Translations under genes and position numbers: made by a program | Assembly: GCA_907165135.1 (NCBI GenBank) | Contig: OU015567.1 | Span: forward strand, 15,314,001-15,378,000 | Length of the DNA stretch: 64,000 nucleotides | Origin: Oikopleura dioica | Taxonomy: Eukaryota; Animalia; Chordata | Reading direction: 5' to 3' | In this document: piece after piece, positions 5,481 to 57,435 of the stretch | Layout: every line of letters starts with the position of its first letter | How positions within the stretch are numbered: the first letter of the stretch is position 1 | The notes under the pieces: model-generated | Databases searched by the model: none | Told to the model about the DNA's origin: nothing | The model's input: only the letters and a program-made list of their open reading frames with translations

Positions 5481-7242
5481 ACTGGCGTCATCAATCACTC
5501 TCGCTCAGATTTGCGCTTTATTCCCGTCTCATTAGTTTGTCCTTGAAATCGGCGAGGGCGGTGACCTCGTTGTTGGGATTTCCTGTGGTGATATTTCAAA
5601 AGACAAAAAAGCCCTGTTTTAGAGATGAAAAACAAATGCTTGTGGTGGGTGGATTCCCTTTATCGGTGCACTTTGTTTTGACAAGCTTAAAAAGGCTCTT
5701 AGAGATTTTCGTATAATCAGCTACTAGAATCGATGATTCATTGTTGGTGACTACATAATGAATACCTTCATTTTTAGCTATCCTGATGGCGCTAGAATTC
5801 CTCCGAAATTGGGTGATTCGCAGATTGTCTTCTCAAGGCTGTAAAACTTGCTGGTAGCCTCGTTGTCTGCCTTTTTGTGTTTTATGTATTTTTTCAACCC
5901 AGAATCAGAATATCAAAAAATACGACCAGCCTTGTTTGTTTGCAAGCGGCAATAAATTACGGCTAAAAAGGTCAGTCCACTCCTGCTGATGTTTATGGCA
6001 ATGAAGTCAAAGCGGCGTTACTGGAATACTGTCAGCGACCGCGACTGTCTCAGTTTGTTGGTTTCAGTCACCATTCTCGTCGAAGATGTGTTTATTTGGG
6101 GATTAATTATGGCTACTTATCAGTATTTACAACTCCGCCAGGCGGAAGATAAAAAACTGAAAGGACTCTGATTTCTGCTTTCTTGTCCTGGAAAGAGCGG
6201 AACCAACGCTAAGCCAGGCTATTGACGGTAAAAGCCGGAGGTGACGGGCTACTTCAACTCTGACTTTGGAAAGACTTTCAAAAAGCTGACGAAATCGAGC
6301 TCAAGAGGCCATTCACTCAAAAGTAGCTTCAAATGAGAATAGAGTCTATTAGACTGTCGCTGTTTTCGACAACATAAATATTGGACACTGTAAATATTGC
6401 TTACTGTTGTCTTTGACCGTGAGAGTAGTGTAGCTAATGTGTGAGCTTTTCTTGAACAGCACTGGAGTTTCCTTGACCTTGATCCGAGCGCAAATTTGAA
6501 AAATCTTAGCTTCGGCACTATAAAACAAAGAAACGGGCTACAGTGATGACAGTAAGTCTCAATCTTACTGTATTCCCATGAACCCTGGTCCATGGAGCAT
6601 GTGATCTGGTTGTTTTCCAGACACTCGGAAGAACCACTACAGTAGCATTAATAAAACAGCGAAATATAAATTTGCTTTGAGAGATCCTGAAGCTGCTCTT
6701 CTTTTTGAGACAAATTCTTCCTCGTGATCAAATAAATTCACATGTAACCGTATAATTTCTACAGTCATCTTTATCCACACCTTCTTCACATTTAGTTTTA
6801 TGCGTCTGCATTCAACTTAACGAGCCGATTGAAAGAAAACGAGAATGTATTTCATTGCTTCCGGCCTTTCAAATTCTCAAGCGGCGACTCAGAAGTGATC
6901 TACAGGGGGTTAAATTCATATTACAGTCTTGTTAGTTTCGACAGCGCAGCGGGGTGCCGGGCGGTAGATCACCCGAGGAATGTTTAGAGAGACCTTTTCA
7001 TCTCGATTACTGTTCATTTTCGCTAAATATACCTTGCTAAGAAAAACGCCAGTCTTTTATTTGCTAAACAGAAGTTTCATAACTTCTGGTAATAGTCGAT
7101 AAGTGGAATCGGAAGATACTGTATTCACCAACTTCCGGTTTTAATCGAAACCTCGAGCTTCTGTCAATCCACTCAATGAATAAATCAATCATGCAAATAA
7201 AAATGAAAATTCTCACTAGTCTAGTGACACTAGAGATAAACC

Positions 7243-18800: not shown

Positions 18801-21800
18801 GGAGAAGAACAACTTGACCAGCCGGAATATTTCCAATCGAATGTTTCGCGAGAAATTTTCCGTTCTGACAAACTGCTGTAGCTATAATTGATTTCCAAAG
18901 AAGCGTAGCGCTGCTTTGTTGACTTGAAAACATAAACTTCTAGCCCATCGCTCATGAGGTGATTGACCTTGATCTGCTCATTCATTTTAGCTCCATATCC
19001 GGAGTACTCAATGACTAGCGGTCGTGAAGAATCCTCTCCCCAGATGACCTTAGTTTCTTGATTTCGAAAGTCGTGGCCGTTGAAGATTATTTTTCCGTCT
19101 TTTTTCAGGACCAGATAAACTTCATCAGATGCATGCGACTAGAATTAATCAACATTAGCCCGCAATTTTTAAGAAAACTTACATTTAGCTGCTTGATAAC
19201 AAGATTACGAGCTTCGGGAATTTCCGCAACTCGTACAAATCCCCTTCCACGAGGATAAAATCTCTTCCGGAAGGTCTTACAGGTGCTATCATCCCCATTA
19301 CAGACGCCGCAAGTGTCTTCTTTTGCCAAAGAGTCAATGTTTCCGTCACATCCTAGCTCGTGACATTCACCCTAAATGGTAAATGAATTTAAGTTTATAG
19401 TTATTTCATGTTATTAACGCTGGTCATATTTTCGAAATTTAATATTTCGAAAACAAAGAGGACGACGTAAATGAAGGTAACTGACCTTGATACAGATACC
19501 GCTGCGGTCGGGACGACACAAAGTGCCGTCTTGAACAGGACCATTGTTGCTGATGTGCCACGACCTCGCTGGATCAACACAAAAGAGGTTGCACACCCGG
19601 TCAGAGGAGTCCATCCATTGAGCTTTGAGCGCGACTTTCTTTTGAAACTTTTTACACAGTATGTCACGAGGGTCCTCCGTGGAAACAGGGCAGTTACGGT
19701 CTGAGTTACAGAATCTATGCTTTGAGTTTGATCCTTATCAAAGGTTTATCTTGGACGTTCCAAGTTGGAACAATTTTGTAAAAAAATTACCAAGTAAAAC
19801 CTTTCCTTCGCATTCTGCCCCACCATTTTGCGGGATTGGATTGTTACAAATTCGATTTGAACTTGTAATCCCGCCTTTACAAGTCGACGAGCATGACGAC
19901 CAACTTGACCATTGAGACCAACCACCATCTACCGATTCATCGAAAGGTAGATGCGGGTTCGCTTGAGAGCGAGAGACACATTGCTTATGGTAACATGCTT
20001 TTCCAGCAGCGCAAGCAGTTCCATCTGCCCAAGGTTGATGTCTAGTCGCGCACAGTTCCGACCCGTCTCTGGCTCTTGTCTTGCACCAGAGCTTTGAGCA
20101 GCTCGGGCCTCGTGAGCAGCTTGTACTATCATGACCAAAGACTATAAATAACTATCAAAAAAGCCCATCAAATTTGTAAATTTCCACTATTCGGAAGCTG
20201 TCAGTCTGATCCTTCCTCGCTTAAAATGAAATGATATTATGATTCCTACCTAGTTTGCATTGAACATCCGGTGATATATGAGTCCTGCCAGTGTAGAGGG
20301 AAGCCTGTGGCTGGATCAAAGTTGGACTTCGCACCGAAAACTCCCGCGTCCTACGCATCATGCAGTTTCCTAGTCCTTGATTGATGAGGTCGCCGATCTT
20401 CTGCGATGAGCACTTCGACCACATCCAAGGTCCGATCATTGTTTCTGATGGATAAAGGAAGACGGAGCCCATGATACCTTCTTCCTTCGCGATCGCCTTG
20501 AAAAACATGGTATAGAGCGGTTATAAGGGCAAGTACAATTGCTAACTGCTCGATTTTCGTAAGAACTATACCTGGCATCGTGGGTGATCGTCATGAATGG
20601 CACCAAGTAAGTGCCCAATCTCGTGGGTAATAGTGTAAGCTGTAGCCATGCCTGTGTCCTCAATAATCGCGCAGGATTTACTTGGTGAACAGATTTTGTA
20701 CTTTTCCGCCAATCCAAGTGTGTTACAACTGGGGTCGTTAAGCGAACATAAGTTTTTTTTGGTTATGAGCACAGAGGTATCCCAGTGTTTTTTGTCAAGC
20801 GGGTTGTGGTAGTTTTGGTCGGCTTGCCATCGACAAAACTTTTGAATGGCTTGATAACTGGGCTTCTTTAAAAATGTCTTCACAAAATAGTAATTGTCGT
20901 TATCAAGCCGTTCCTTAGATAAAAGCAAGTCGGCATCAATCGTATCACCAGCGTAGTAAAATAGATTATCAGAACGATAGGGCATAATCTCAGTCCTATT
21001 CGTAAAAGTTCGCAAAAAGTTCAACTACCTATTTAACGCGTTTATTTGCGCACTTGGTATAAAATAAATTGATGGCAAAAGTTTAATCTCAAAGATCTTT
21101 GCCGGAAAGACGGCTTGGTTTATTGCGCGGAGATCGAGAGATTTTGGGAATTGGATAAGCTCGTCAGACCGTTTTTGCGAACAATTGCCTGACAACTTTC
21201 AGCGTAATATCTTGGCCAAGGGAAGGATGCCGGATGATTCCAGCGACGATGGCCATGATTAGGGATTCTCACGGAAAAACAAAGTGAACTCAATTTTCAT
21301 AAAACTTTCACTCTAGATGTATTTTTTTCCGCTGATTCCAAATATGCCAAAATCATTATGAAATTCCGAGTAAGTGGTAATTTACAGCTGATAACGTCGC
21401 TTGGTGGTAAGCCCTAGTACTTGGTTCGGTTTGGAAGTAATCCTTGACTCTGAGTCGACTAATTCTTAGTAAACGGGTAGCTTACCACTTCCGGGAACTT
21501 TTTTGTCCAGACAACCCGCCGTTATTTGTGACAGATTTCCTACAGTAGGTCAAAGTGTGCACCCATCGAGAATATGAAGGGCGCGCTAATGCTTTCCAGG
21601 CCTCCCGGGGAGCGCGTAAAGCACTAGCGCGCCGTCACTTTCAGTCGATCATCGGCAGATTTCTGGAGGTATGAGTCTCCCATATTCTCAAAACTTTCAC
21701 AGAGTCTTAAGAAAAGTATGCTTGAGAACATATCCAAAATTCAGCGTTTTTTAAGCTTGTTTGGGGGCTCAAAAGTAAGAGAAACTCATTTCCGGGCCGC

Positions 21801-24240
21801 GCTCAGCCCGTAATGCACTACCGCGGCGCCAACCTTGGTCAGTCAACAGGTGGTTTTGGAAGGTTCTAGTCAATCCATAGTCTTCAAAATTTGAGTGATA
21901 CTGGCATAGGGTCTGTTTTATAACATATCTAAAAATCACAAAATTATAAGCTTGTTTGCGCATAGAAAAGTCGTGTTTTGTGTGAATTTTGCTGATTTCG
22001 AGGGTATTTTGCCAAAAAAACTATTTTTTGAAAGCAGATAATGAATAAGCTTCATCATTTTAGTAAGCTCGAAATGTTTTTCGCTCAAATTGTCCTGAAA
22101 AAATCAGAATAGCATTTGACAATTTTGAGTGCAGAAGGCCGCGCCGCGCGCAATTTTTCCGTGAGAATCCCTAGCCATGATCTTTGCCAAGTAGTTTTCG
22201 ATGGAAATGACGCTGCTTCCAAGTTGACGGAAAAATCGAGTCATAGAAGGGTCCACAAAAACGGCGACTCTGAGTTCTCGAGGAACTACATATCGTTTTC
22301 TTCGAGTGTGCGAGTTCTTAAATTTTTTATTATTTCATACGCTCATACTTTAAATGAGGAAGTGCTGACTAGAAATTGGCTTGAAAATCGAATCTAAAAC
22401 AACTTCCGTCATTGGTACGAGATCAAGGTTACGCGGCGGCATTAAGGGATCAACTATCCAGATCACTTACACGAGTTGGACGGGTGAAGTGACGAGAGGT
22501 CCGGAAGTCCCTTGGCAATGTGTCCTGCTCCGAGTTTTCTCCACAACTAGCCTCGCCATTGACTTTTCTTCTAGCAGCTTCAAGTTCGTCATCAAAGTCG
22601 AGATCAATCCTGCCATGCTGTCTGTCTTCAATGAAGCCAGTCTGAAAGCTAAAAGTCAAAACAAATCTTGACCGTTGTTCCTTGAAAATAATTCTAAATC
22701 AATTCAAAAATCATCAAAAGTGCCAAAAACATCCGCAACGACCTTGTTTCCGGAGTAAAATGATAATTAATCGTAAATCAGCGGGAGCTTGATTTAATGC
22801 AGCGCTGAAAATAGAAAAAGTCACAAGACATTATCATAAATGTCCGAAAGGAAAGCCTCGCGAAGAGCAATTAATCCTGTCTAATTGGACCTTGTCTACT
22901 TTGCTACCAAGAGAATCTTTCAGGGTTAGGGTTAGGGTCAGAGCTGCAAATTTGCTGAACTGAGTGAGCTGAGCCAACTGAGAGCGACTGCTCAGCTCAG
23001 CTCAGTTATCTTTGAAATCTGATCAGCTCACCTCAGACAATATTCACTCAGCTCAGCTCAGCACAATTATTTTCGAACAAGATCTGTACTGCTCAGCTCA
23101 GCTCAACTCAGACAATTATCACTTAGCTCAGCTTAGCTCAGCTCAACCAGCTCAGCTCAGCTCTAATTAGGGTCCGCTCAGCTCAGCTCCGCTCAATGAC
23201 CTCTGAAAAGGCCAGATCAGCTCAGCTCAGCCAAGTAATCTCCGAAATAAGCCAGCTCAGCTCACCTCAGCAAAAATAAAGCAAAATTTCCAACTCTGGT
23301 TAAGGTTTTATCTTTTTCTAAAAAATCTTCTCGATGTACTTTTGTACTGACAAGTTCATAACGATCTATTCATTTAATAATCTTCCAACAAAGCGGCTTG
23401 GCTTTTTATAAAAATGATTCTGCCGACTGACCAAGTTTTGATAGTCCGGCTTTGAGTGAAAGTATATTGTTTATGCAGCGTAAATTCTCCATAATTATTA
23501 AACGAAACCGGGGATTACGCGAATAATGACCGCGAGAGTCCCCAAATTCGTCGCACAATGGCCTCTTCGCACTTTTACTTTAAATATTTAATTCTTCTGA
23601 AATGTATAGCTTAACTAAATATTCAGCGCAAACGCGGGCCTTTATCCTGTTTGAAGTAAGATGAGTACTGAATTTTAACGAGGTCAATTCTGAAATCGCC
23701 AATTATTTTGACAGGAGGGGCACAATTTAAGTCAAAATTAATTAGCCCCGATATTTTAAGCTTCTATTTTTAGATTCACAATTGAAATCTCCGGAAGTCG
23801 GAAAGTCTCAAGAATCTGCTTTTTTCGCTGATTCATCGAGGTCTAATTATTTTGAATGTGTCACTCGTAATTGTCAAGTTCTGCTTCCTCTAGTCTAGTC
23901 TTTCTATGCCAAATGAATGATTCGTTAGCAAATTTCCTACTCTAAGAAAATGACTGTCTCAGTATTTATGTGCCAAATTGATGACTAAATAAGAAAGGTC
24001 TTTTGCAGGTCGTAACTTATAAATTGCAAAAGAAGTCGATTGGGGTTATTTCCGTTGTTAATTACATTTGATTTGATTTGAGTACTATTACAGTAATGGA
24101 TAGCGTTTTCTTTGATCTTCTAATTATAGCCCAGCGCTAAGCTGTATTGACGCTCTTACAGGTAGGCTATCAGGTCAGATCTCTCGGCCAGAGAGTTTCG
24201 ACTGCCAAGTGCAATTAGCGCAGCAACAAATCATCCCACC
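15849..24240 (-). CDS. ADAMTS9/ADAMTS20/GON-1-like metalloprotease (5' end approximate)
   Basis: Furin site RRKR, then AVFVDPSM; zinc motif HEIGHLLGAIHD (ORF 20566-21024); TSP1 VDGGWSQWSSWSSCS; Cys-rich and spacer regions; many TSP1 repeats (ORF 16599-18734); C-terminal GON domain (FSINLSGTGF, CGGLCAQC). One catalytic-domain exon is interrupted by an insertion at 21260-22173. Confidence 0.9.
21260..22173. mobile_element. 914-bp hAT-like non-autonomous element inserted in an ADAMTS coding exon
   Basis: Perfect 20-bp TIR TAGGGATTCTCACGGAAAAA; 8-bp TSD GCCATGAT at 21252-21259 and 22174-22181; no transposase ORF. Confidence 0.92.
22939..23298. mobile_element. 360-bp hAT-like MITE filled with (GCTCA)n repeats, in an ADAMTS intron
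   Basis: Imperfect TIR CAGAGCTGCAAATTTGCT / AGCAAAATTTCCAACTCTG; 8-bp TSD GTTAGGGT (22931-22938) vs GTTAAGGT (23299-23306), one mismatch. Confidence 0.75.
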
Positions 24241-40975: not shown

Positions 40976-41623
40976 TCACGTTTCTGAGGTGGTTGTTTGC
41001 TGTGTTTGTAATTGCAACTGATTCGCTACGGCGTCGGTAATCTGACTTGAAGGGCCACCGGATGGAGGTGGTGGAACTGGGCTAGAATCATCGGGGTATC
41101 CGTATTTTCGTAGAAGCTCAATATTCTCCATCGGCGAAATTGTTCCTTCGATCGTTAGTTTCATGAAGTCAGTTGTGTAGCAAGGAGGAAGAGTGTCGAA
41201 CATTCCCTTCTTATACGCGTCAATCTGGGCTTTTTGGGCGGCTTTTTCAAGGATCAAAAAGTAATTGACTAAGAAAGTTACTTTCTGATTTTCGATCCTA
41301 ACTAATAAAGCAGTCATAGAGCCACCAATCCAGCCCATTGGGACGGAGAAAACAAATTTCACGAATCCCTTATTCCGGAGCAAGAAAAAAGCCGGTCCTC
41401 CAAGCATCAAAGCTCCAGCTCCAGCGGCAGCTGCAAGGGTTGGTGTTCCTGGAACGGCCGCAGCAATCTTCTCCCTAGCGATCAAATCATCAGAAGTAGG
41501 CCTCCAAGCATACGCCTTCAAGTGGGTTCTGCACAAGATTCACAAAAATGCGAAATTGAAAGTCTGTCAGTTCCCTAGCTTTCCATCAATATTCATGCGA
41601 ATAATATCATCTCCGACACTCAT
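40976..41623 (-). CDS. Small membrane protein, weakly OCIA-domain-like
   Basis: ORF 40976-41536 plus a short first exon (probable GC-AG intron); WRPTSDD...two hydrophobic segments...KFVFSVPMGWIGG recalls OCIAD proteins. Confidence 0.45.
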
Positions 41624-41796
41624 TATTTGCTAAAATGGGGAAAGAATTTTATTCAGAAAATCTCATTTTGGATACTTATGAAGAAATTGAAATGAAGAAC
41701 TTTGCAGGATATAAATTGCAATATCACTATAAGAACATGGAAATGACAGTGTATGCTGAAAAATCATCGCTTAGATAAGAAACGCTTGCTAATAAG

Positions 41797-44700
41797 TTAT
41801 TGCACAGGTAAATTTGGGCACTCTTCGTCCCCAGTAATTGGAGAAAGAGATTCACTTTGACTGTGAATTGCGGAGCTAGAGTCAAGGAGAGCTTGAGAAT
41901 TGCGTTTCTTCAGTTTTCCATCTGCTCCGCAAGATAACAGATGTTCCCCACAGAATGCCAAGCCCATCACTCCAGCAGTTGGGTTTTTGAAGACTTGAAA
42001 TATTTTTAATGATTGTTCATCATCCGATTTTACCGGAAGATCTGGGATGCTCAAGCATAAGGACTGAAACGAGCGACTGTTGAGCGAGAGAGCAGATTCT
42101 GATTGAACCATCGGTCGATCCAACCGCGAGGATTTCTCCATTGCCGCTGATATTCAGACATTTTACCATCCCGGCGAAGTTAATCGAAGAAACAACCAGG
42201 TAGTCCTTGTCGACAAACACGAGCCCTCCTTCTTTTCCGCCAACACAAATCAACTAAACATGCGTTTGGTTATCAGCTCAGAGAGGAAAATGACGGACCT
42301 GGTATTTGAGAGAATAAGTGACAGCTGATGCAGATTCGGAGATTTCTCTGAGTTCGAGTGAGTAAATAGGCTCGAGGTACTGCCTTGTGAGGAGATCCCA
42401 AACGCATAGGGCCGAGTTCGAGAAATTTCTATGCACACCAGCTGAGATAAGAATAGAAGAACCTTCCAGAAAGCAAATTGATAAGACATCACGTCCTATG
42501 TTGAATCGTTGCACTGGAGGAAGCACTGAATTTATCTCCATGAAAAGTTTGAAAAATGAGAGCTTTTACGTTGTTGGGAGAAGAGAATTTGGTCGACGAT
42601 CCAAATTCGCACTGATCCATCTTCAGCAAGAGCAGCTAGTCGCGAATAGGGTGGGTCACTTTTCAAACAATTTTTCTGTACGCTTTGTTTTTTGAGCTTA
42701 TCTGATAGAGCTCGTTGCGCTGATCATTTTGAGCCCTCAAATACCTCCGTACCCTTCCGGGAAAATACTTTTGCAGAATCTGGGAAATCATGAAAATCGA
42801 AAATTTTTGGTCAAATTAGGGTCAATTCCGGTATACTCAGAGCTTTAAAATGTGTATAAGATAAGTTCCTGTCGTTTCCCGGAGTAGATTTGGGTATCAA
42901 ATTGACCAGCTTGACGAGTTCTATCTGATGACGTAATAATATCACATGATATGGGGGTGTGCCCAAAAGTTATTCTAGAAAAACCATTTTTTCGAACATG
43001 AATTTTTCAAAAAAAACCCAAAAAAATTTTTTTTTCCTTATCTATTGAAAAAAGTTTTTTATTCGGGTCAGATCTATCACCTGAAAAAATTAAATCAAGT
43101 TCGGAAGACCAACCATGAAAGTGACCCACCCTAGTCGCGAACCAGATTGACAAAAGGTCAAGCATTTTATTCGAGCTTTTGATTCTTTCGAGGAGAGAAT
43201 TCTTGTCACAGAATTAGCCGCAAATTGAATGACATAGATAGGGCTGCCGCCAAAAAAATCAGGTACCACTTTTTGGGTACCTAGAGCTTTTTTACTCGGC
43301 TATTATGTTCTTTGAGTCAAGAAAAACGATTTCCAGCAAAAAAAATGGGTTCCATATGGATGACTCATCGAAAAATAAGCATTCAAAGTGCTTCCGGAAG
43401 CTAACTTCCGGCGGCCTGAATCTTTTTCAATTCTGATGCCGGAAATGGATTCTACGGGTCCGAAAACCTGTAAATCGAGTCTCAAAAAGTGTCAATCTTC
43501 TACATGAGAGCCAGAATCGACGATTTTTGGTCGATTTTCTTTGTTGTTGTCAGATCAAATTTCTTTTTTTCGTAAAAACGAAGGAAATGCTTATCAGTAG
43601 GCCCAAAATTGGTTTCTAGGTTATCGAGGATGCTGAAAAAGGTAAGATGGGCCATGAACCGCGATAAACCGTCACTGTAACCGGTCGGTTTTTCTAAAAA
43701 TTAATCAAAATATTGGATAAACGTTATTAAATCTTGTTAAAAGCCCGTTGATTATTGACATGAATGATATGGCCACCTTTGGTCAAATTTGGTCGAGCTT
43801 GGCCGGAGGACGACCCGGAGGACCAACCTGGTGGAAGACTAAGTACTGGAAGACCAATATTAAAAAAAAAAAAATCCTTGAAGGGCCAGAAATTTCCATT
43901 TTCGGCCACTTTTGGTCGTTTTTGCCGGAGGAACTCTTGGAGGACCACCCTGGTGGGAGACAAACTGCTGGAAGACGCATATTAAAAACAATATTTAATA
44001 AAATTTGAATCTTTGAAGGCCCAAAAATTGCAATTTTCGGCCACTTTTGGTCTTTTGTGCCGGAGGACCTCAAAGAGGACCACCCTGGTGGAAGAAAAAC
44101 TACTGGAAGCCCAATATAAAAAAAAACATATTTAATAAAATTTTAATCTTTGAAGGGCAAGATAATGCCATTTTCGGCCACTTTTAGCCTTTTTATGCCG
44201 GAGAAACTCGAGGAGGACCAACCTGGTGGAAAACAAACTGCAGAAAGACCAATAACAAAAAAACAATATTTAATAAAATTTAAATCAAAGAAGGGCCAGG
44301 AATTGCCATTTCGGCCACGATCGGCCTTTTTTTTGCCAAAAACCGCCGTAAGACAACCCTGATGAAAATAACTGCTTGAAAAAAAAATTTTTAAAAATAA
44401 AATAAGATCCTTGAAGGGCAAAGAATTCCCCTTTTTTGCCATCTTTGCCCGTTAACTGCCGAAAAACTCCTGGAGGAAGACTAACTATAAGCAAACTGCG
44501 TTCATTCAATTCAGTCTTCATCGGGGCCAAGCCGACCCAAAGGAGAGGCAAGCCCCGTCTATTCAATTCGATCAGGATCGGGGCCAAGCCGACCCGAAGG
44601 GGAGGCCAGCCCCGTTTATTCTATTCAGTCAGGATCGGGGCCAAGCCGACCCGAAGGGGAGGCCAGCCCCGTTTATTCAATTCAGTCTTCATCGGGGCCA

Positions 44701-47700
44701 AGCCGACCCAAAGGGGAGGCCAGCCCCGTCTGTTCAGTTCAGTCAGGATCGGGGCCAAGCCGACCCTAAGGGAAGGCCAGCCCCGTTTATTCAATTCAGT
44801 CAGGATCGAGGCCAAGCCGACCCGAAGGGGAGGCAAGTCTCGTCTATTCAATTCAGTCAGGATCGGGGCCAAGCAGACCCTAAGGGAAGGCCAGCCCCGT
44901 TTATTCAATTCAGTCAGGATCGAGGCCAAGCCGACCCGAAGGGGAGGCCAGCCCCGTCTACTCAATTCAGGCAGGATCGGGGCCAAGCCGACCCGAAGGG
45001 GAGGCCAGCCCCGTCCATTCAATTCAGTCAGGATCGGGGCCAAGCCGACCCGAAGGGAAGGCCAGCCCCGTCTATTCAATTCAGTCAGGATCGGAGCCAA
45101 GCCGACCCGAAGGGAAGGCCAGCCCCAACTGTTCAATTCAGTCAGGATCGGGGCCAAGCCGACCCGAAGGGGAGGCCAGCCCCGTTTATTCGATTCAGTC
45201 AGGATCGGGGCCAAGCCGGCCCGAAGGGGAGGCAAGCCCCGTTTTTTCAATTCAGTCAGGATTGGAGCCAAGCCGACCCGAAGGGGAGGCCAACCCCGTC
45301 TGTTCAGTTCAGTCAGGATCGGGGCCAAGCCGACCCGAAGGGAAGGCCAGCCCCGTTTATTCAATTCAGTCAGGATCGGAGCCAAGCCGACCCGAAGGGG
45401 AGTCCAGCCCCGTCTGTTCAGTTCAGTCAGTATCGGAGCCAAGCCGACCCGAAGGGGAGTCCAGCCCCGTCTGTTCAGTTCAGTCAGGATCGTGGCCAAG
45501 CCGACCCGAAGGGGAGGCCAGCCCCGTTTATTCAATTATGTCTCGGGCAGGGCCAAGCCGACCCGAAGGAGGGCCATTCCCGTCTATTCGATTGAGTCTG
45601 GGGCAGGGTCAAGCCGACCCGAAGGGGAGGCCATTCCCGTCTATTCGATTTAGTCAGGATCGGGTTCAAGCCGACACGAAGGGGATTTTCAAAATTGCTA
45701 TTATATCTAGGTGCGGCTTTATGTTCTCGAGATTTTAAAAGCTTTTAACTCTCGCTCCGGGCGTGAACTGGCTCCAACGTAGGGCGCTCATTCTCTCAAA
45801 GAAACCCCGCGCCTCTTCTTCATAGCGCAGTGAATAACACAAAAACAATTTGTTAATATAACAAGATTTCAAAGAAAAATTTGAAAAATCGGCCGATTAA
45901 AAAAAATTCATATAATATGATAGTAATTATAAATAAATTTATGAAATTCTTTATTCAAAATATTATCTTTCCGCTCATGCAATGCCCAGATTCACCCTAT
46001 TTAGAAGGAAATCAAGCAAATACCTCCGCCCCATTTGACTGTTCGATATCTGAAAACCCTTTATTTGCTATATTTTTCTTTCGGGTCAGCTTCGCGCCGA
46101 TCAAGACAAGATTAAATAAACTTTGCTGGCCTCCACTTCGGGTCGGCTTGGCCTCAATTCAGAAAAAATTGAATAAACGGGGCTGGCCTCCACTTCGGGT
46201 CGGCTTGTCCCCGATCCAGACTGAATTGACAAGACGAGGCTGGCCTCTACTTCGGGTCGGCTTGGCACCATTCCTGACAGAATTAAACAGACAAGGCTGG
46301 CCTCCCCTTCGTGTCGGTTTGGCTCCAATCCTGACTGAATTAAATAAATGGGGCTGTTCTCCCTTCGCGTCGGCTTGGCCCCGCTCAAGACTTAAGTGGA
46401 TAAACGGGGCTGGCCTCCCCTGTGGGTCGGCTTCGCCCTGCTCCAGACTAAATTGAATAGACAGGGCTGACCCCGATTCTGACAGAATTGAACAAACGGG
46501 GCTGGCCTCCCCATCGTGTCGGCTTGGCCCCGATCCTGATTTAATTGAAAAGACGGGGCTGGCCTCCCTTTCGGGTCGGCTGGGCACTGCCCAAGACCTA
46601 ATTGAGAAAACGGGGCTGGCCTCCCATATGGGTCGGCTTGGCCCCGATCCAGACAGAATTAAATAGACGGGGCTGGCCTCCCCTTCGGGTCGGCTTGCCC
46701 CGATCCTGACTGAATCGAATAAATGGGGCTGGCCTTCCCTTCGGATCGGCATGGTCCCGATCAAGACAGACTTGAATAGACGGGGCTAGCCTCCCCTTCT
46801 AGTCGGCTTTGCCCCGATCAAGACAGAATTGAATAGACGGGGCTGACCTCCTTTTCGGGACGGCTTGGCCCCGCTCCAGACTAAATTGGATTAACGGGGC
46901 TGGCCTCTCCTTCGGGTCGGCTTGGCCCCGATCCTGACTTAATCGAATTAATGGGGCTTGTATTCCCTTCGGATCGGCATGGTCCCGATCAAGACAGAAT
47001 TGAATAGACGGGGCTAGCCTCCCCTTCTAGTCGGCTTCGCCCCGATCCTGACTGAATTGAATAGACGAGACTTGCCTCCCCATCGGGTCGGCTTGGCCCC
47101 GCTCCAGACTAAATGTGATAAACGGGGCTGGCCTCCTTTTCGTTTCGGCTTGGCCCAGATCCTGACTTAATTGAATAGACGGGGCTTGCCTCCCCTTCGG
47201 GTCGGCTTTGCCCTGCCCCAGATTATATTTAATAAACGGGGCTGGCCTCCCCTTCGGGTCGGCTTGGCCCCGATCCTGACTGAATTGAATAGCCGGGGCT
47301 GGCCTCCCCTTCGGGTCGGCTTGGCTCCGATGCTGACTGAATTGAATAAACGGGGCTGGCCTCCCCTTCGGGTCGGCTTGGCCCCAATCCAGACAGAATT
47401 GAAAAGACGGGGCTGACCTCCCCTTCGGGTCGGCTTGGCCCCGATCCTGACTGAATTGAATAGACGGGGCTGGCCTTCCCTTCGGGTCGGCTTGGCGCCG
47501 ATCTTGACTGAATTGAATAGACGGGGCTGGCCTTCCCTTCGGGTCGGCTTGGCCCCGATCCTGACTGAATTGAATAGACGAGACTTGCCTCCCCTTCGGG
47601 TCGGCTTGGCCCCGATCCTGACTGAATTGAATAAACGGGACTGGCCTCGTATTCGGGTCGGCTTGGCCCCGATCCTGACTTAATCGAATAAACGGGGCTG

Positions 47701-50700
47701 GCCTCCCCTTCGGGTCGGCTTGGCCCCGATCCTGACTTAATCGAATAAACGGGGCTGGCCTCCCCTTCGGGTCGGCTTGGCCCCGATCCTGACTGAATTG
47801 AATAAACGGGGCTGGCCTTTCCTTCGGGTCTGCTTGGCCCCGATCCTGACTGAATTGAATAGACGAGACTTGCCTCCCCTTCGGGTCGGCTTGGCCTCGA
47901 TCCTGACTGAACTGAACAGACGGGGCTGGCCTCCCCTTTGGGTCGGCTTGGCCCCGATGAAGACTGAATTGAATAAACGGGGCTGGCCTCCCCTTCGGGT
48001 CGGCTTGGCCCCGATCCTGACTGAATAGAATAAACGGGGCTGGCCTCCCCTTCGGGTCGGCTTGGCCCCGATCCTGATCGAATTGAATAGACGGGGCTTG
48101 CCTCTCCTTTGGGTCGGCTTGGCCCCGATGAAGACTGAATTGAATGAACGCAGTTTGCTTATAGTTAGTCTTCCTCCAGGAGTTTTCGGCAGTTAACGGG
48201 CAAAGATGGCAAAAAGGGGAATTCTTTGCCCTTCAAGGATCTTATTTTATTTTTAAAAATTTTTTTCAAGCAGTTATTTTCATCAGGGTTGTCTTACGGC
48301 GGTTTTTGGCAAAAAAGGCCGATCGTGGCCGAAATGGCAATTCCTGGCCCTTCTTTGATTTAAATTTTATTAAATATTGTTTTTTGTTATTGGTCTTTCT
48401 GCAGTTTGTTTTCCACCAGGTTGGTCCTCCTCGAGTTTCTCCGGCATAAAAAGGCTAAAAGTGGCCGAAAATGGCATTATCTTGCCCTTCAAAGATTAAA
48501 ATTTTATTAAATATGTTTTTTTTTATATTGGGCTTCCAGTAGTTTTTCTTCCACCAGGGTGGTCCTCTTTGAGGTCCTCCGGCACAAAAAGACCAAAAGT
48601 GGCCGAAAATTGCAATTTTTGGGCCTTCAAAGATTCAAATTTTATTAAATATTGTTTTTTTTTAATATGCGTCTTCCAGCAGTTTGTCTCCCACCAGGGT
48701 GGTCCTCCAAGAGTTCCTCCGGCAAAAAACGACCAAAAGTGGCCGAAAATGGAAATTTCTGGCCCTTCAAGGATTTTTTTTTTTTTTAATATTGGTCTTC
48801 CAGTACTTAGTCTTCCACCAGGTTGGTCCTCCGGGTCGTCCTCCGGCCAAGCTCGACCAAATTTGACCAAAGGTGGCCATATCATTCATGTCAATAATCA
48901 ACGGGCTTTTAACAAGATTTAATAACGTTTATCCAATATTTTGATTAATTTTTAGAAAAACCGACCGGTTACAGTGACGGTTTATCGCGGTTCATGGCCC
49001 ATCTTACCTTTTTCAGCATCCTCGATAACCTAGAAACCAATTTTGGGCCTACTGATAAGCATTTCCTTCGTTTTTACGAAAAAAGAAATTTGATCTGACA
49101 ACAACAAAGAAAATCGACCAAAAATCGTCGATTCTGGCTCTCATGTAGAAGATTGACACTTTTTGAGACTCGATTTACAGGTTTTCGGACCCGTAGAATC
49201 CATTTCCGGCATCAGAATTGAAAAAGATTCAGGCCGCCGGAAGTTAGCTTCCGGAAGCACTTTGAATGCTTATTTTTCGATGAGTCATCCATATGGAACC
49301 CATTTTTTTTTGCTGGAAATCGTTTTTCTTGACTCAAAGAACATAATAGCCGAGTAAAAAAGCTCTAGGTACCCAAAAAGTGGTACCTGATTTTTTTGGC
49401 GGCAGCCCTAGACATAGACATCTCCTGATGCGCTTCCTGCGACGTAAACCATCGGGTCACTAAATACAAAAATTGAAGGATAAATACATATTGACGTCTT
49501 ACGTTGGAGAGGCGACTAATCGACGGATGTCTTTGAATGGTAGACGACTTCGAACTTCCAGTTTCGAATTGCCAATGACGGGATAAAACTCGATTATCTC
49601 GGTCGCTGTTGAAATGGCCACTTGCTGAGACTCAGTTTTTAGGGCGCTAAAATGGTGTTTTTGATCATTTAGTTACTCAAAGTGTCTGTTATGCTACAAG
49701 AGGTTATATTTTCTGTGCGATGAATAGAAGCGAGTTGTATAAAAGTAGCTGGTTAATTGGCTGTTTACTTGAACATTCAGATACCTTTTATATGCACTAT
49801 TTTGGCTTCGAAAAAAACTAGTCAAGTATTATTTTTTATGAATGCGTACCTAAGAGTCATATCATCGCTGTCTTTTTGCAGTGGATACAAAAGCGACAGT
49901 GTGGTCGATTTTGGAAGCAAAGAACTGCTACAAACTGAGTATACCACCTCAGGATCCGTGTAAGAGACTTTTGTATTCTTCTGGATCTCCATGTGACTGT
50001 GCGAGACTTCCTCGTAGTCCTCTCGATTTTGAACTAAGATAATATAAATTTCTCGTTATAAAAAGGCATTTTACCCGCAATCTTGTCATAGACAAATTGG
50101 TAGAAAAACGGCTTCAACAAGTGAACTTTCGAAAGAAGAATCCACTGAACCGAAAGCTCTCTTGCAACGAGACTGTTTCCAGATGAAAATGGATTCAGCT
50201 GCTCGATAGACATATCTGGCGTGAAATTCGGTATCGCTTCCAGTGGCAGGTCAATGTCAGAAAGAATGTCAAACTCGTCGAATGACCATTTTTTGATCAA
50301 ATCTTCGATTCTTTTCATCATATTCGACTCCAGCATTCGATTTAGTTCTTTTGACGAGTTTTTACGATTGCTATTTCTTTGACTGAAGATCATTCTAATT
50401 TAACTCGTTCCTGCTAATCTCTGCTGGACAATAACGAGTGCTACCGCTCTGCTCAGTCTCGGGAAGAAAGCCATTCGATCGTTCAATTCCGAATCGCATT
50501 CATGAAATCCATCATCGTCCATGTACTCCTCATCGAATAGATTTTCGAAGAACTCGTGCCGATCTTTGATATCTTGAAGGAGCAAATTCAGCAAATGATC
50601 GTTCTCCAACGGTGGGGTAAACTCATGCGTTGAGGATAACGAGCCAAATGCTAGAGCAACTCTCAAGAACAGAGAAAAGTAAAGCAGATTACCTTTCATC

Positions 50701-53700
50701 AAAAATCTTTTACTGTGAAACTCCGAAACAAAAAGTCGATTGACTATTCTTAGTTCTGTAGTTTGCCGTTCATCAAGCAGAGCGAGAACGAGAAGCGTCA
50801 GTACGGTTATAGAAGTGAATTCCAGGATAAGTTTTGTTGCTTCAAAGCCACCCTTGTTCAATGGCCAGAATGCTGCGGCTGCTGATGTTTCGTCAGAGTT
50901 CTTCGGAATCTGGTCTTCGTTTTCATCTGCTGGGGATCGTGGGATCAACCGGTCAAATAAATCTTTTAGCTAGAATGGGCTAGATCACATTTTTATCAAT
51001 ATATTTTTGTGAAAATCTGAGCCGTTCCTGAAGATAGTCATGTCTAAGAGCCGATCGACTAGTGACTTTTTCCGCCACAGTAGGAAGTTTGGAGTATCTT
51101 GAAATCTGTGCAACAATCTTCTCGAAATAGTGCCGTATGTGCTCCAAATCCGAGGATACGTAAAAGTTCTCGGCACCCCTAGAAACAATTGCTGAAGTCT
51201 TTCGACTAATCTTCACAATCTTACCTAACGAACGAAAGTAGAGGGAAGGACACATTATAATTTTGAAGGTAAATTTGAAGGGCTGTTTGAAACTTCACTG
51301 AATCCACAGACCGATTTCGACGAATTAACTTTGTAAAGCTAGGGCAGTAACCTGGCCAAAGTGCTCGCAAATCTGCTTCGGAAGAAACTAGATTGTCGAT
51401 TATTGCTTTCAAATCTTCTCCACGTTCTTCACTGTTTGTTTGGAAAGAAAATTCCTCAATAAGGAATGTTTTCAATGTTGACTTTGAAATTTCTTCTGAT
51501 AAGATATCCGGTCCATCTTCAAAGACAGCATTAACCTCATCATCTCGCCGGGTTTCCTCGACGACTTTAGGTGGAGAATCAGCTTCATCATCTTCGCTTT
51601 TTTCTTCGTCAGACCATTCCAAACTCAGAGCATCTTCTTGAACCGGTTCAGGTTCTCCCCAATTCAAATCCAGCGTTTCTTCTTTCACAGGTTCTGGCTG
51701 TCCCCAGTCCATTGGCGAAGCGCTGTCGAGGGTTTTCCCAGGAGAATCGCAAGAAACTTCTATTTGAACGGCTTTTCGGATCTTTGGTAAATTTTCAAGC
51801 GTGATCATCGCCGGCAAGGGGCAGCCATTTACCAAGTGCTCGAATGCCGCTCTGCTACAGAGAACTCGCTCTTGGGAAGTATTGCTAGATGATGTTTTTC
51901 CATGAATACTGAGAGCTTTCGTATACAAAGGATGCTTCGATAAGAACTTGTAAAAATTAAAGATCTTCGCTGGATCGTATTTTCTGCAGACTTCTGAGTC
52001 CAAGAAAATGTCCACGGACTCAATTTGCTTTCCCTCAAGCCAGTAAAGCATCGATGTGATGAAACTGTCTTCTTTCGAGAGCTCCTTGAATTTTTGAAGG
52101 AAAAGATCTTGTCCAGAGCGAAGCTTGGCTATCAAAAGAGTCAAGCAGCTATCCTGAAGTCGATTTTGAGCAACATCAAGGGCATCATTCAGCGCTCCTC
52201 CGATCAGAAAGAACCCTATTGCCTCAAGATAGCGGCGTTTTCCGAGAAGGGCGAATGCGTTTTCAAAGCAGCCTGTTTCCATCGCGTATCTGAGAAGTCA
52301 TTGGCAAAGAATTGAGCCATCTTTAGGTTGTTGACAGATTTGAAGAGTCCGCTGAGGATCTTTTCCTTCCCGAGAATCGAGTACCAGACAATAACAGGCA
52401 TAGGATCTTTTTCCTTCTGGAAGATGATTCTTGAGAGCTTCTCAATTGACATCCTCAACGTAGCAACGGATTTGCACCAGAACGCCGCTCCTGTGAGCTT
52501 CATCAAGTCCCAAGAAAAATCGACACTTTCCATAATGATCGACATGATTTCAGCCTGACTTTCAGAATGAAAAGCCCAGATCATCGCTGACGATGGAAGG
52601 TCGCTTTTAACTCGAGATGCGTTTCGTACGTATTTTGTGATACAACGATGATGGTGCCATTGAAGCATAAAAGTCGTACCGGCTCGATCGATACCGGCGG
52701 GAATAACGGTATTCAAGCACTCCCAGATCGCCTCTAAGGTCACTTGCTCTGATCTTGTTATTCCAGATAAACGGTAGCGCATAAGAATATCAGAAACGGT
52801 AACTTCGGAAGTATCGAACTCGTCTTCCGAGCATTCTGACTCAGATGACGAAAAGTCGAGGACGAGATCTTTCTCGAGATCTTCAGAAAGTCGTCTTTCA
52901 AAGTCCACAGTATCAGGATCCATCACTGACTTTCTTCTTTGATTTGGTCCAAGGTCCGAATTCACGTTTCCAAAAGAAGAATCGAGCAATGTCTGCAGCG
53001 GCGGCATGTTCGGCCTGATCTCAGACAAAGTATTATCGCTGAAAATCTCAGCCATCATCGCTTCCTTCGACTTTTTCGGTTTTACAGATCTTTTGAAGAA
53101 ATCGACGAAGGATGTGAGAATACCTTTCGCCAAATTGACTTTCCCCAAATTTATGATTTTCTGAAGAGCAACTGGGGAATACGAAGGACGAGACCAGGTA
53201 GGCTCAGATTCTAGGAGAAGAAGAGATTTTCCACAAATGGCGATAAAATGTTTCAAATCGAGTCGTTCAATCAATGATGGTCGTTTCAAAGTACCAGGAG
53301 TTTGAAATCGTGAGGATAGACAAATTTTCCCCTTTGGCGAAGTAGAGATGAAATGGGCAGGAGGCTGTTGAAGAATTTCTACGGTAAGAATAGTACGTCC
53401 GATTAGGAAGAAAACAGTGCTTGTCAGATTCGAGTGCTCGAATAAAAATGCTTTCGGGCTTTCCATCCAGCACTCAGTCGCCAGCTCAATGGTCAATTGA
53501 TCAAGGAACTCCCATAATTCAAAACCGGTGTGAATGCTGCTGTGAAGATTACACTCAATTTGCTTTCCAGAATGACTCCACGAGAAGATCAATCCAGGAC
53601 CGGCTGATAGAACGTTATCGTCGGAAATATTGATGCTTGGACAGATGGGAGCATTTATTTCACTTTCGTGGAAGAAATTCAAGGAACTTCCCTGTTTTGA

Positions 53701-56746: not shown

Positions 56747-56760
56747 TAGGGTGGGTCACT
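56747..56760. mobile_element. Solo TIR identical to the 42647-43133 MITE end
   Basis: TAGGGTGGGTCACT; no partner TIR or duplicated TSD found in the window. Confidence 0.5.
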
Positions 56761-56761
56761 C

Positions 56762-57435
56762 TCAACCTGAAACACAGTACTGAGTATTTGATATAGTATA
56801 TTTCTGTATAAATAAAGAACTGCAACCCAATCCTATGCTAATAGTCTTCGATGTATCCATCAGCGTAGAATCAATCCCAATCGGCACGGGCACTAGCCCC
56901 AAATCTGCTCCAATTCGAGTAGCAATTGGCAAGAACTTTGTCAATTTCGCCATGCTTTCTTCTTGCCTGAGATTGACCATTTTCCCTAGAATTTCTGATT
57001 GTGACTTTGCTGTTGCTGCAATTTCTTTTCTTCTGGCGATAGGGTCGATTTCGGAAATGCCTGTGAAGTTGCCTTTTGAAATTGAAGAGCATATTTCTGC
57101 ATACGTCTTTAATTAATTATTTTTTATCTTGAAAGAATTCGAAAAACTGTACCTTGGATCTGTCCAAGACGGAGAAGAGCGATCTCCTTCCAAGCTTCAG
57201 CATTTTCGAGAAACCATAAAGCTTCCTTTCTCTACCACTAGCGCTGTAGAAACTCGCGCGCTGATTGGCCGAGCCGCGGAAAGCCCCGATCTCCAACGAG
57301 GGATTCGATTTTATGCATGTCTGGTTCTAGATGTTTGTGAAGAGAAAAACTTAAAAACTTATTTGTGAAGACAACACAACCGTGAAGAAAATGATATAAA
57401 AGCTGACCGAAATACAAGAAAATTCGAAGAGACAA
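56762..57435 (-). CDS. Hypothetical protein
   Basis: ~115-aa open frame KTYAEICSS...RIGADLGL ending at 56762, preceded by an exon-like EALWFLENAEAWKEIALLRLGQIQ|GT. Confidence 0.3.

Follow-up and report, generated by a model that had tools for sequence, protein, structure and literature searches.

The question raised by this locus is whether a transposon of more than 6 kb lying in a coding exon of the larvacean Oikopleura dioica is removed from the message as a new intron, or whether it simply disables the gene into which it was inserted. We analyzed a stretch of 64,000 nucleotides of the O. dioica assembly GCA_907165135.1 (contig OU015567.1, positions 15,314,001 to 15,378,000 of the forward strand), referred to here as the window, and all positions below are those of the window unless stated otherwise. 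The host gene, on the minus strand, is DMXL/Rav1 (rabconnectin-3), which encodes a V-ATPase regulator. An earlier note, made from the letters of the window, had placed a foldback element in a WD40-coding exon of this gene, and that placement was borne out by self-BLAST of the arms, by a Pfam match to Rav1p_C, and by colinear orthologues. Judged from its sequence, this is a non-autonomous foldback transposon of hAT-like type that entered a constrained DMXL exon recently, and the allele that carries it is probably loss-of-function or crippled and still segregating.

The foldback element and the exon that it splits

The borders of the element were set by two target-site duplication (TSD) copies of 8 bp, a left copy at 43231..43238 and a right copy at 49411..49418, which both read GACATAGA and are identical. 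With both copies excluded, the foldback proper extends over 43239..49410 (6172 bp); the previously proposed range of 43231-49418 therefore located the element correctly and included both duplication copies. The foldback starts with TAGGGCTGCCGCC at 43239, and the reverse complement of TAGGGCTGCCGCC closes the 49410 end (TAGGG...CCCTA), so that the termini read TAGGGCTGCCGCC.../...GGCGGCAGCCCTA. The 29-nt terminus had exactly two occurrences in the 64-kb window, against zero expected by chance. When 42500-50200 was compared with itself by BLAST, 43239-45686 paired with 49410-46962 at 94.3% over ~2455 nt. Each arm is built of an outer unique module followed inward by arrays of a 57-bp unit, an arrangement that places the element in the foldback structural class.

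The left outer arm (43239..44503, 1265 bp) contains sub-repeats of 135-138 bp at 43817-44332, and is mirrored by the right outer arm (48146..49410, 1265 bp), with sub-repeats at 48311-48794. Alignment of the two outer arms gave 1257 matches, no substitutions, and 16 single-base gap columns, those inspected being in A/T runs; the near identity of the terminal inverted repeats (TIRs) that had been described was upheld, whereas their length of ~1.5 kb was shortened to 1265 bp. Because the duplication copies are perfect and the arms are free of substitutions, the insertion is judged to be young. Inward of the outer arms, repeat tools identified the inverted arrays of the GC-rich 57-bp unit that the earlier reading had described, with 20.8 copies in the left array (44504..45685), and, in the right array (46080..48145), 29.4 inverted copies at 46471-48145 together with 6.9 degenerate copies at 46080-46469. 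The 57-bp unit forms a small hairpin of its own (single-unit RNA fold of -20.7 kcal/mol, z = -2.0). The centre of the foldback is occupied by an AT-rich unique spacer, as had been stated, but its limits, formerly 45670-46095 (~430 bp), were revised to approximately 45686..46079 (~394 bp).

No transposase domain was found by Pfam in the seven open reading frames (ORFs) of at least 96 amino acids in the foldback, and a 191-aa ORF beginning in the spacer gave no Pfam match; since no transposase is carried, the element would have to be moved in trans. The Pfam names HlyU and Big defensin, obtained on the translated 57-bp array, covered no significant stretch and were rejected as artefacts of repeat translation. 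A search of the window against Rfam gave no match.

The terminal consensus of hAT elements is YARNG. The TAGGG ends of the foldback fit this consensus, and the 8-bp duplication and the lack of transposase are likewise shared with non-autonomous hAT elements, whereas its inverted repeats measure 2.45 kb and are made from tandem arrays, in contrast to the tens of bases found in hAT elements. The target preference often quoted for hAT elements, nTnnnnAn, is a weak, statistical criterion; the foldback target (GACATAGA / TCTATGTC) fitted it on neither strand, and that of a second, neighbouring transposon (GTCGCGAA; see below) did fit. No hAT transposase with matching ends was found in the foldback or elsewhere in the 64-kb window. 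In its build the foldback resembles Drosophila FB and Galileo-type elements, which likewise have two long inverted arms of tandem sub-repeats, a short middle, no coding capacity, and a tendency to form hairpins or cruciforms. The duplications of Drosophila FB are 9 bp and those of Galileo, a member of the P superfamily, are 7 bp, whereas the DMXL foldback has an 8-bp duplication and hAT-looking ends; the likeness is structural and not one drawn from sequence comparison.

The host gene was identified by a Pfam match of Rav1p_C (PF12234) to an 899-aa ORF (E = 4e-33) and to the next ORF (E = 1e-12), and DMXL orthologues were returned by a library-wide protein search. In tblastn with a transposon-free reconstruction, the C-terminal 700 residues of DMXL orthologues were colinear across the insertion point, with joint E-values down to 7e-17; in one example, GIDGSVCLWQFG...RIVKCKFNQSGSKFGACDMAGNIMLW aligned with GSASGDVYVIQFAA...RIKCLTFCQSGSRLAALAEDGSVRIW over the insertion site. 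This colinearity indicated that the interrupted exon encodes conserved WD40 blades. When the foldback and one duplication copy were deleted, the open frame was restored (...SDPMVYVAGSASGDVYVIQFAANSVTRILSSKE..., with the joint ...SDPMVYVAGSASGDVYV|IQFAANSVTRILSSKESKARIKCLTF...), and the predicted junction of the empty allele was ...GATGTCTATGTC|ATTCAATT.... The assembled frame, on the other hand, reads GTC TAT GTC TAG, the first foldback triplet being an in-frame stop, which confirmed that the unspliced message would have a TAG directly after ...GDVYV. The upstream part of the split exon (49419..49459, minus strand) makes up, with the 8-bp duplication, a 49-nt segment encoding DPMVYVAGSASGDVYV, and is preceded by a GT..AG intron (49460-49849). 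The middle part of the exon (IQFAANSVTRILSSKESKARIKCLTFCQSGSR; 43142..43238, minus strand) lies between the two transposons. The ordinary DMXL introns inspected were all GT..AG, with three of ~45 nt and a longer one of 390 nt, in keeping with the median of 49 nt published for O. dioica (PMC8008620), and the DMXL stop codon is at 41797-41799.

Occupied sites, empty sites, and related elements

Two DNA contig sets (X2 and X6) were aligned to 41500-43810. In X2, one contig had a 119-nt loose end before 43239 that read GCAGGAAGCGCATCAGGAGATGTCTATGTC and matched 49411-49440 exactly in reverse complement. Because the right flank and the terminal repeat are joined in this contig, the foldback insertion is real, and a second DNA sample of the lineage carries it as well. 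The two haplotypes in X2 had depths of ~42 each and of 70-85 where both coincide, and the contigs of the foldback arm had depths of 90-106; this arm depth corresponds to approximately two arm-equivalents and hints at one heterozygous foldback. In X6, contigs joined the foldback terminal repeat to a different flank, which indicated that a further copy exists elsewhere; none of the X6 contigs listed covered 43138-43215, and this set is silent on the DMXL site. A piece of ~150 bp in the outer arm (43372-43527) had a contig depth far above that of the rest of the arm (490-940 in X2 and ~3000 in X6), and looks like a module common to a higher-copy repeat family.

A divergent lineage provided a view of the uninterrupted gene. 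The closest protein, P0001, showed 78% identity with the 899-aa ORF and 69% identity with a 353-aa ORF of the window; its coding sequence is on L001, a Logan contig of 13 kb that is colinear with the minus strand of the window at a nucleotide identity of ~72% (70-74%). Positions 6506-6742, 6740-6843, and 6835-8933 of L001 matched window positions 49653-49414, 43236-43133, and 42646-40515, respectively. Because these matches run on across each transposon position, the sites of the foldback and of the second transposon are both empty in the L001 lineage. The L001 exon is uninterrupted and reads DPMVYVAGSASGDVYFIQFAANSLTRILSAKESKSRIKCLTFSASGSRLAVLAEDGSVRIWIVDQ; its flanking introns are at the same positions as those of the window, and there is none at the foldback site. 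Most nucleotide differences between the DMXL exon and L001 were silent for the protein; by this comparison, the exon is under purifying selection and the insertions are specific to the lineage of the window. When the orthologous 76-aa exon ORF was used as a query against protein and contig databases, it matched its own lineage only, and no copy of the window lineage was returned. Over ~11 kb (L001 1-13028 against window 56236-38000), the gene order of DMXL, the neighbouring gene, and carbonic anhydrase was colinear, and the two transposons were the only large length differences. An apparent one-base frameshift was also seen in DMXL at ~52260-52275 (minus strand; ~52265), where the window reads TTGAAAACGCATTC, with four A's, and where the protein of the other lineage (..AALKNAFALL..) implies five; it is either a homopolymer error of the assembly or a real lesion of the haplotype.

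The second transposon is a 487-bp miniature inverted-repeat transposable element (MITE) at 42647..43133, with the TIR TAGGGTGGGTCAC and an 8-bp duplication (GTCGCGAA) at 42639-42646 and 43134-43141. It shares the DMXL exon and the TAGGG terminus with the foldback, from which it is 97 bp downstream. Removal of the MITE restored ...QSGSRLAALAEDGSVRIW, with the joint ...QSGSR|LAALAEDGSVRIW. The MITE is polymorphic, as an X2 contig with an empty site skipped from 42635 to 43131 (495 nt, with 11 ambiguous letters). Two in-frame routes for its removal were found in silico: a GG..AG route (43130..42636) that equals exact removal, and a GT..AG route (43129..42659) that leaves +24 nt in frame. A lone MITE terminus (TAGGGTGGGTCACTCT) was also seen at 56747-56762, upstream of DMXL, with no inverted partner within 1.7 kb.

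In the whole window, there were exactly three TAGGG...CCCTA pairs with identical flanking 8-mers, namely the foldback, the MITE, and, at 21260-22173, an element of 914 bp whose ends are TAGGGATTCTCA and whose 8-bp duplication (GCCATGAT) is perfect. Removal of the 914-bp element gave a minus-strand open frame (...RKRYVVPRELRVAVFVDPSM...) that resembles the beginning of a metalloprotease domain of the ADAMTS type. Because the MITE and the 914-bp element share the five-base terminus of the foldback and have, like it, perfect 8-bp duplications, a family of TAGGG-ended elements that duplicate 8 bp is mobile here.

Possible splicing routes and the probable fate of the allele

The earlier note had suggested that the foldback might be a giant hairpin intron. 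The fold of the transcribed strand had a predicted minimum free energy of -5129 kcal/mol, with 89% of the bases paired and a stem that starts from the first foldback base, in keeping with the suggestion that almost the whole foldback could pair and bring its ends together. The arithmetic of the two routes that had been put forward was also reproduced. A hypothetical GG..AG intron of 6165 nt (43244..49408, minus strand) leaves +15 nt (scripted count; YPIYV) and yields ...GDVYV-YPIYV-IQF.... In the other route, the upstream GT donor at 49850|49849 is joined in silico to 43244|43243, which drops the 49-nt segment and leaves the message in frame at -36 nt (hand count); this swaps DPMVYVAGSASGDVYV for PIYV, a net loss of 12 residues, with the predicted junction ...CTCTTAG|CCCTATCTATG.... 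The proposed pair of an acceptor-like site (T7-GGCGGCAG|CCCTA, at 43244|43243) and a GG donor (TA|GGGCTG) was present as sequence, but the donor, read by eye, agrees at only ~3/9 positions with the usual 5' splice-site consensus, and both sites are buried in a helix in the predicted fold, where the donor GG is paired to CC in CCCUA and the acceptor AG to CU in GGGCUG. Thus, the hairpin would bring the ends together yet bury both splice sites in a perfect duplex. Splice sites within a duplex are normally hidden from U1 and U2AF.

Other borders were tried and rejected. The GT donors within the terminal repeat (CAG|GTACC and TGG|GTACC) retained the in-frame TAG, and joining the GT donors just upstream (GAT|GT and TAT|GT) to the CAG acceptor left +4 or +10 nt and shifted the frame. 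A manual check for AG..AC or AG..AT borders, in the style of the larvacean Fritillaria, found none in frame at the foldback site.

RNA reads from two oligo-dT runs (X10 and X11) were aligned to 41500-43810, which covers the side of the left junction. No reads were found in either run over 41734-43810, a region that includes the DMXL 3' exons and the terminal repeat. In the same runs, an exon of the neighbouring gene had an RNA depth of 12-15x, with reads mostly at least 99% identical to the window. No RNA contigs holding DMXL were found in the run searches, and metagenome scans for the empty junction, for the +15-nt junction, and for the foldback terminus were blank. Searches with an 87-aa ORF of the window gave no candidates in protein and contig databases, and there were no exact database records for four ORFs of the window. 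The reads of the neighbouring gene on 41579-41623 (minus strand) ran on into letters whose reverse complement is ...TTTGAGTCCGATTTCGATTGTCTAACAG, and this is the 3' part of the 40-nt O. dioica spliced leader (SL) (PMC6883708), in keeping with O. dioica as the source of the window. The leader is joined at 41623, 174 nt past the DMXL stop codon, and the ORF of the next gene is at 40976-41536. The gene 3' of DMXL is hence SL trans-spliced, and it may belong to one operon with DMXL.

Our preferred reading is that a hAT-like foldback, mobilised in trans, was recently inserted by cut-and-paste into the WD40-coding DMXL exon, and that this gene copy would be loss-of-function or strongly weakened, with an intact allele probably alongside it. 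If the merging of haplotypes retained the longer of two alleles, the assembly may overrepresent the foldback allele. Should an in-frame message be made at all, its strongest signals would be the proven GT donor of the upstream intron at 49850|49849 and the T7-GGCGGCAG acceptor at 43244|43243, and the product of this route, with a net 12 residues lost from a WD40 blade, would probably be crippled. There was no sign of rescue, given the zero RNA reads, the weak GG donor, and the burial of both sites in a helix.

Several points weigh against a disabled allele that is still segregating. The heterozygosity was read from word depths of the assembler, and word depth is not copy number. The foldback allele is found in two samples or more, and on the assembled haplotype a second transposon, 97 bp away, has either been inserted since or been brought together with it. 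The zero DMXL reads may be compatible with weak expression of DMXL in the sampled material. Furthermore, all three TAGGG-type elements in the 64-kb window sit in coding exons of conserved genes; if exonic elements are really so frequent, recessive nulls alone are hard to accept, which suggests tolerance of many of these insertions, presumably because they are spliced out.

The strongest alternative takes up this last point and regards the foldback as a nascent intron, removed from DMXL pre-mRNA by the GG..AG route or from the upstream donor, with a hairpin that joins the ends and an allele that still works. We consider this doubtful. Both routes are in frame and the acceptor-like site consists of a T7 tract followed by CAG, whereas the TA|GGGCTG donor fits the 5' splice-site consensus poorly, every GT donor inside the foldback leaves the in-frame TAG in the message, and the two cut sites lie paired within a continuous perfect helix of the kind that usually blocks recognition. 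In addition, the insertion of YPIYV or the net deletion of 12 residues would hit a conserved WD40 blade. O. dioica tolerates non-GT donors (PMC8008620; PMC7072748), but a length of 6.2 kb is >100 times the species median of 49 nt. Introns derived from MITEs, with TIRs and TSDs, are spliced in the sister larvacean Fritillaria borealis (PMC11282704), and in the window the neighbouring MITE has its two in-frame routes in silico and all three TAGGG-type elements are exonic. On the other hand, the orthologous exon of L001 is without an intron at the foldback position, and the insertion is young, with depths that hint at heterozygosity in X2. If the neighbouring gene shares an operon with DMXL and the sampled strain carries the foldback, transcription must cross the foldback, but there were zero RNA reads at either junction, in runs aligned over the left side, where no DMXL reads were found. 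The stronger proposal, that the foldback is cleanly spliced from DMXL pre-mRNA through its kilobase hairpin, and is an intron birth in progress that represents one case of a genome-wide process with TAGGG-ended hAT-like elements, is in our judgment unlikely.

It is less likely still that this DMXL haplotype has long been non-functional and has been collecting lesions, among them the two transposons and the frameshift. Two independent transposon insertions within 97 bp of one exon, the base apparently missing at ~52265 when compared with the other lineage's protein, and the zero DMXL reads in two RNA runs would suit a decaying gene copy. However, the other ORFs are intact, including the 899-aa and 353-aa ORFs with their 78% and 69% identity to P0001, the differences of the exon from L001 are mainly silent, and the frameshift is possibly a homopolymer error of the assembly. 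The transposons are also very young, and the MITE is still polymorphic.

That long-read chimeras or mis-assembly produced the palindrome or its inner arrays is very improbable: the arms differ by 16 single-base indels alone, those inspected lying in A/T runs, like long-read consensus noise, the apparent frameshift in the A-run at ~52265 hints at residual indel errors, and the copy numbers of the arrays (20.8 against 29.4 + 6.9) are beyond the reach of short contigs, but a perfect 8-bp duplication lies exactly at both ends, the split exon continues correctly on each side, and in the contig of the second sample the right flank runs directly into the terminal repeat, so that the flank-to-repeat contig and the duplication together establish the insertion as real and confine the uncertainty to internal lengths.

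Known intron-forming systems and significance

The reading that we prefer, an insertion allele that is disabled or crippled, was compared with systems in which inverted-repeat elements do behave as introns. MITE-derived, non-canonical introns of F. borealis have reportedly been described by Henriet et al. in 2019. Removal of these introns by the U2 spliceosome was shown experimentally, with AG-AC or AG-AT as the usual borders (PMC11282704, PMC13326754). The DMXL foldback has in common with them a larvacean host, TIRs and a TSD in coding sequence, a lineage-specific position, and ends that can pair. It differs in that it is 6.2 kb and not MITE-sized, in that AG..AY borders are out of frame, and in that no splicing of it was observed.

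Introners of Micromonas, Aureococcus, and dinoflagellates, which are said to have been treated by Huff (2016) and Gozashti (2022), offer a second comparison. Like them, the foldback is an exonic DNA transposon that has TIRs and a TSD; one splice site could derive from the element, and the frame could be kept with a few added codons. Introners, in contrast, are defined by splicing and by hundreds of near-identical intronic copies. In the nonconventional introns of euglenids, the pairing of inverted repeats joins the ends, and there are non-canonical borders and TSD-like flanks (PMC11282704). They differ from the foldback in belonging to another kingdom, in their non-spliceosomal mechanism, and in their short terminal pairing, and they serve as an analogy only.

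Taken alone, the foldback insertion is a mutation of an ordinary kind, in an essential gene that regulates the V-ATPase. If it is transcribed, it would be a natural kilobase-scale source of double-stranded RNA inside a housekeeping gene; that such RNA might be edited or yield siRNAs, as the earlier note proposed, is speculative. Its value lies in the test case that the window offers, with three young hAT-like elements, one of them polymorphic and all exonic, each with in-frame removal routes on paper. The matter at issue is whether O. dioica makes introns from exonic transposons, as F. borealis does, or merely carries deleterious alleles. The turnover of introns in O. dioica is very high. Non-GT/AG introns account for 11-12% of the introns of this species, whose median intron is 49 nt (PMC8008620), and GA-AG introns are abundant (PMC7072748). 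If intron birth from TAGGG-ended elements, which we consider unlikely, were nevertheless true, exonic elements tolerated by splicing could explain the long-puzzling excess of lineage-specific and non-canonical introns in O. dioica.

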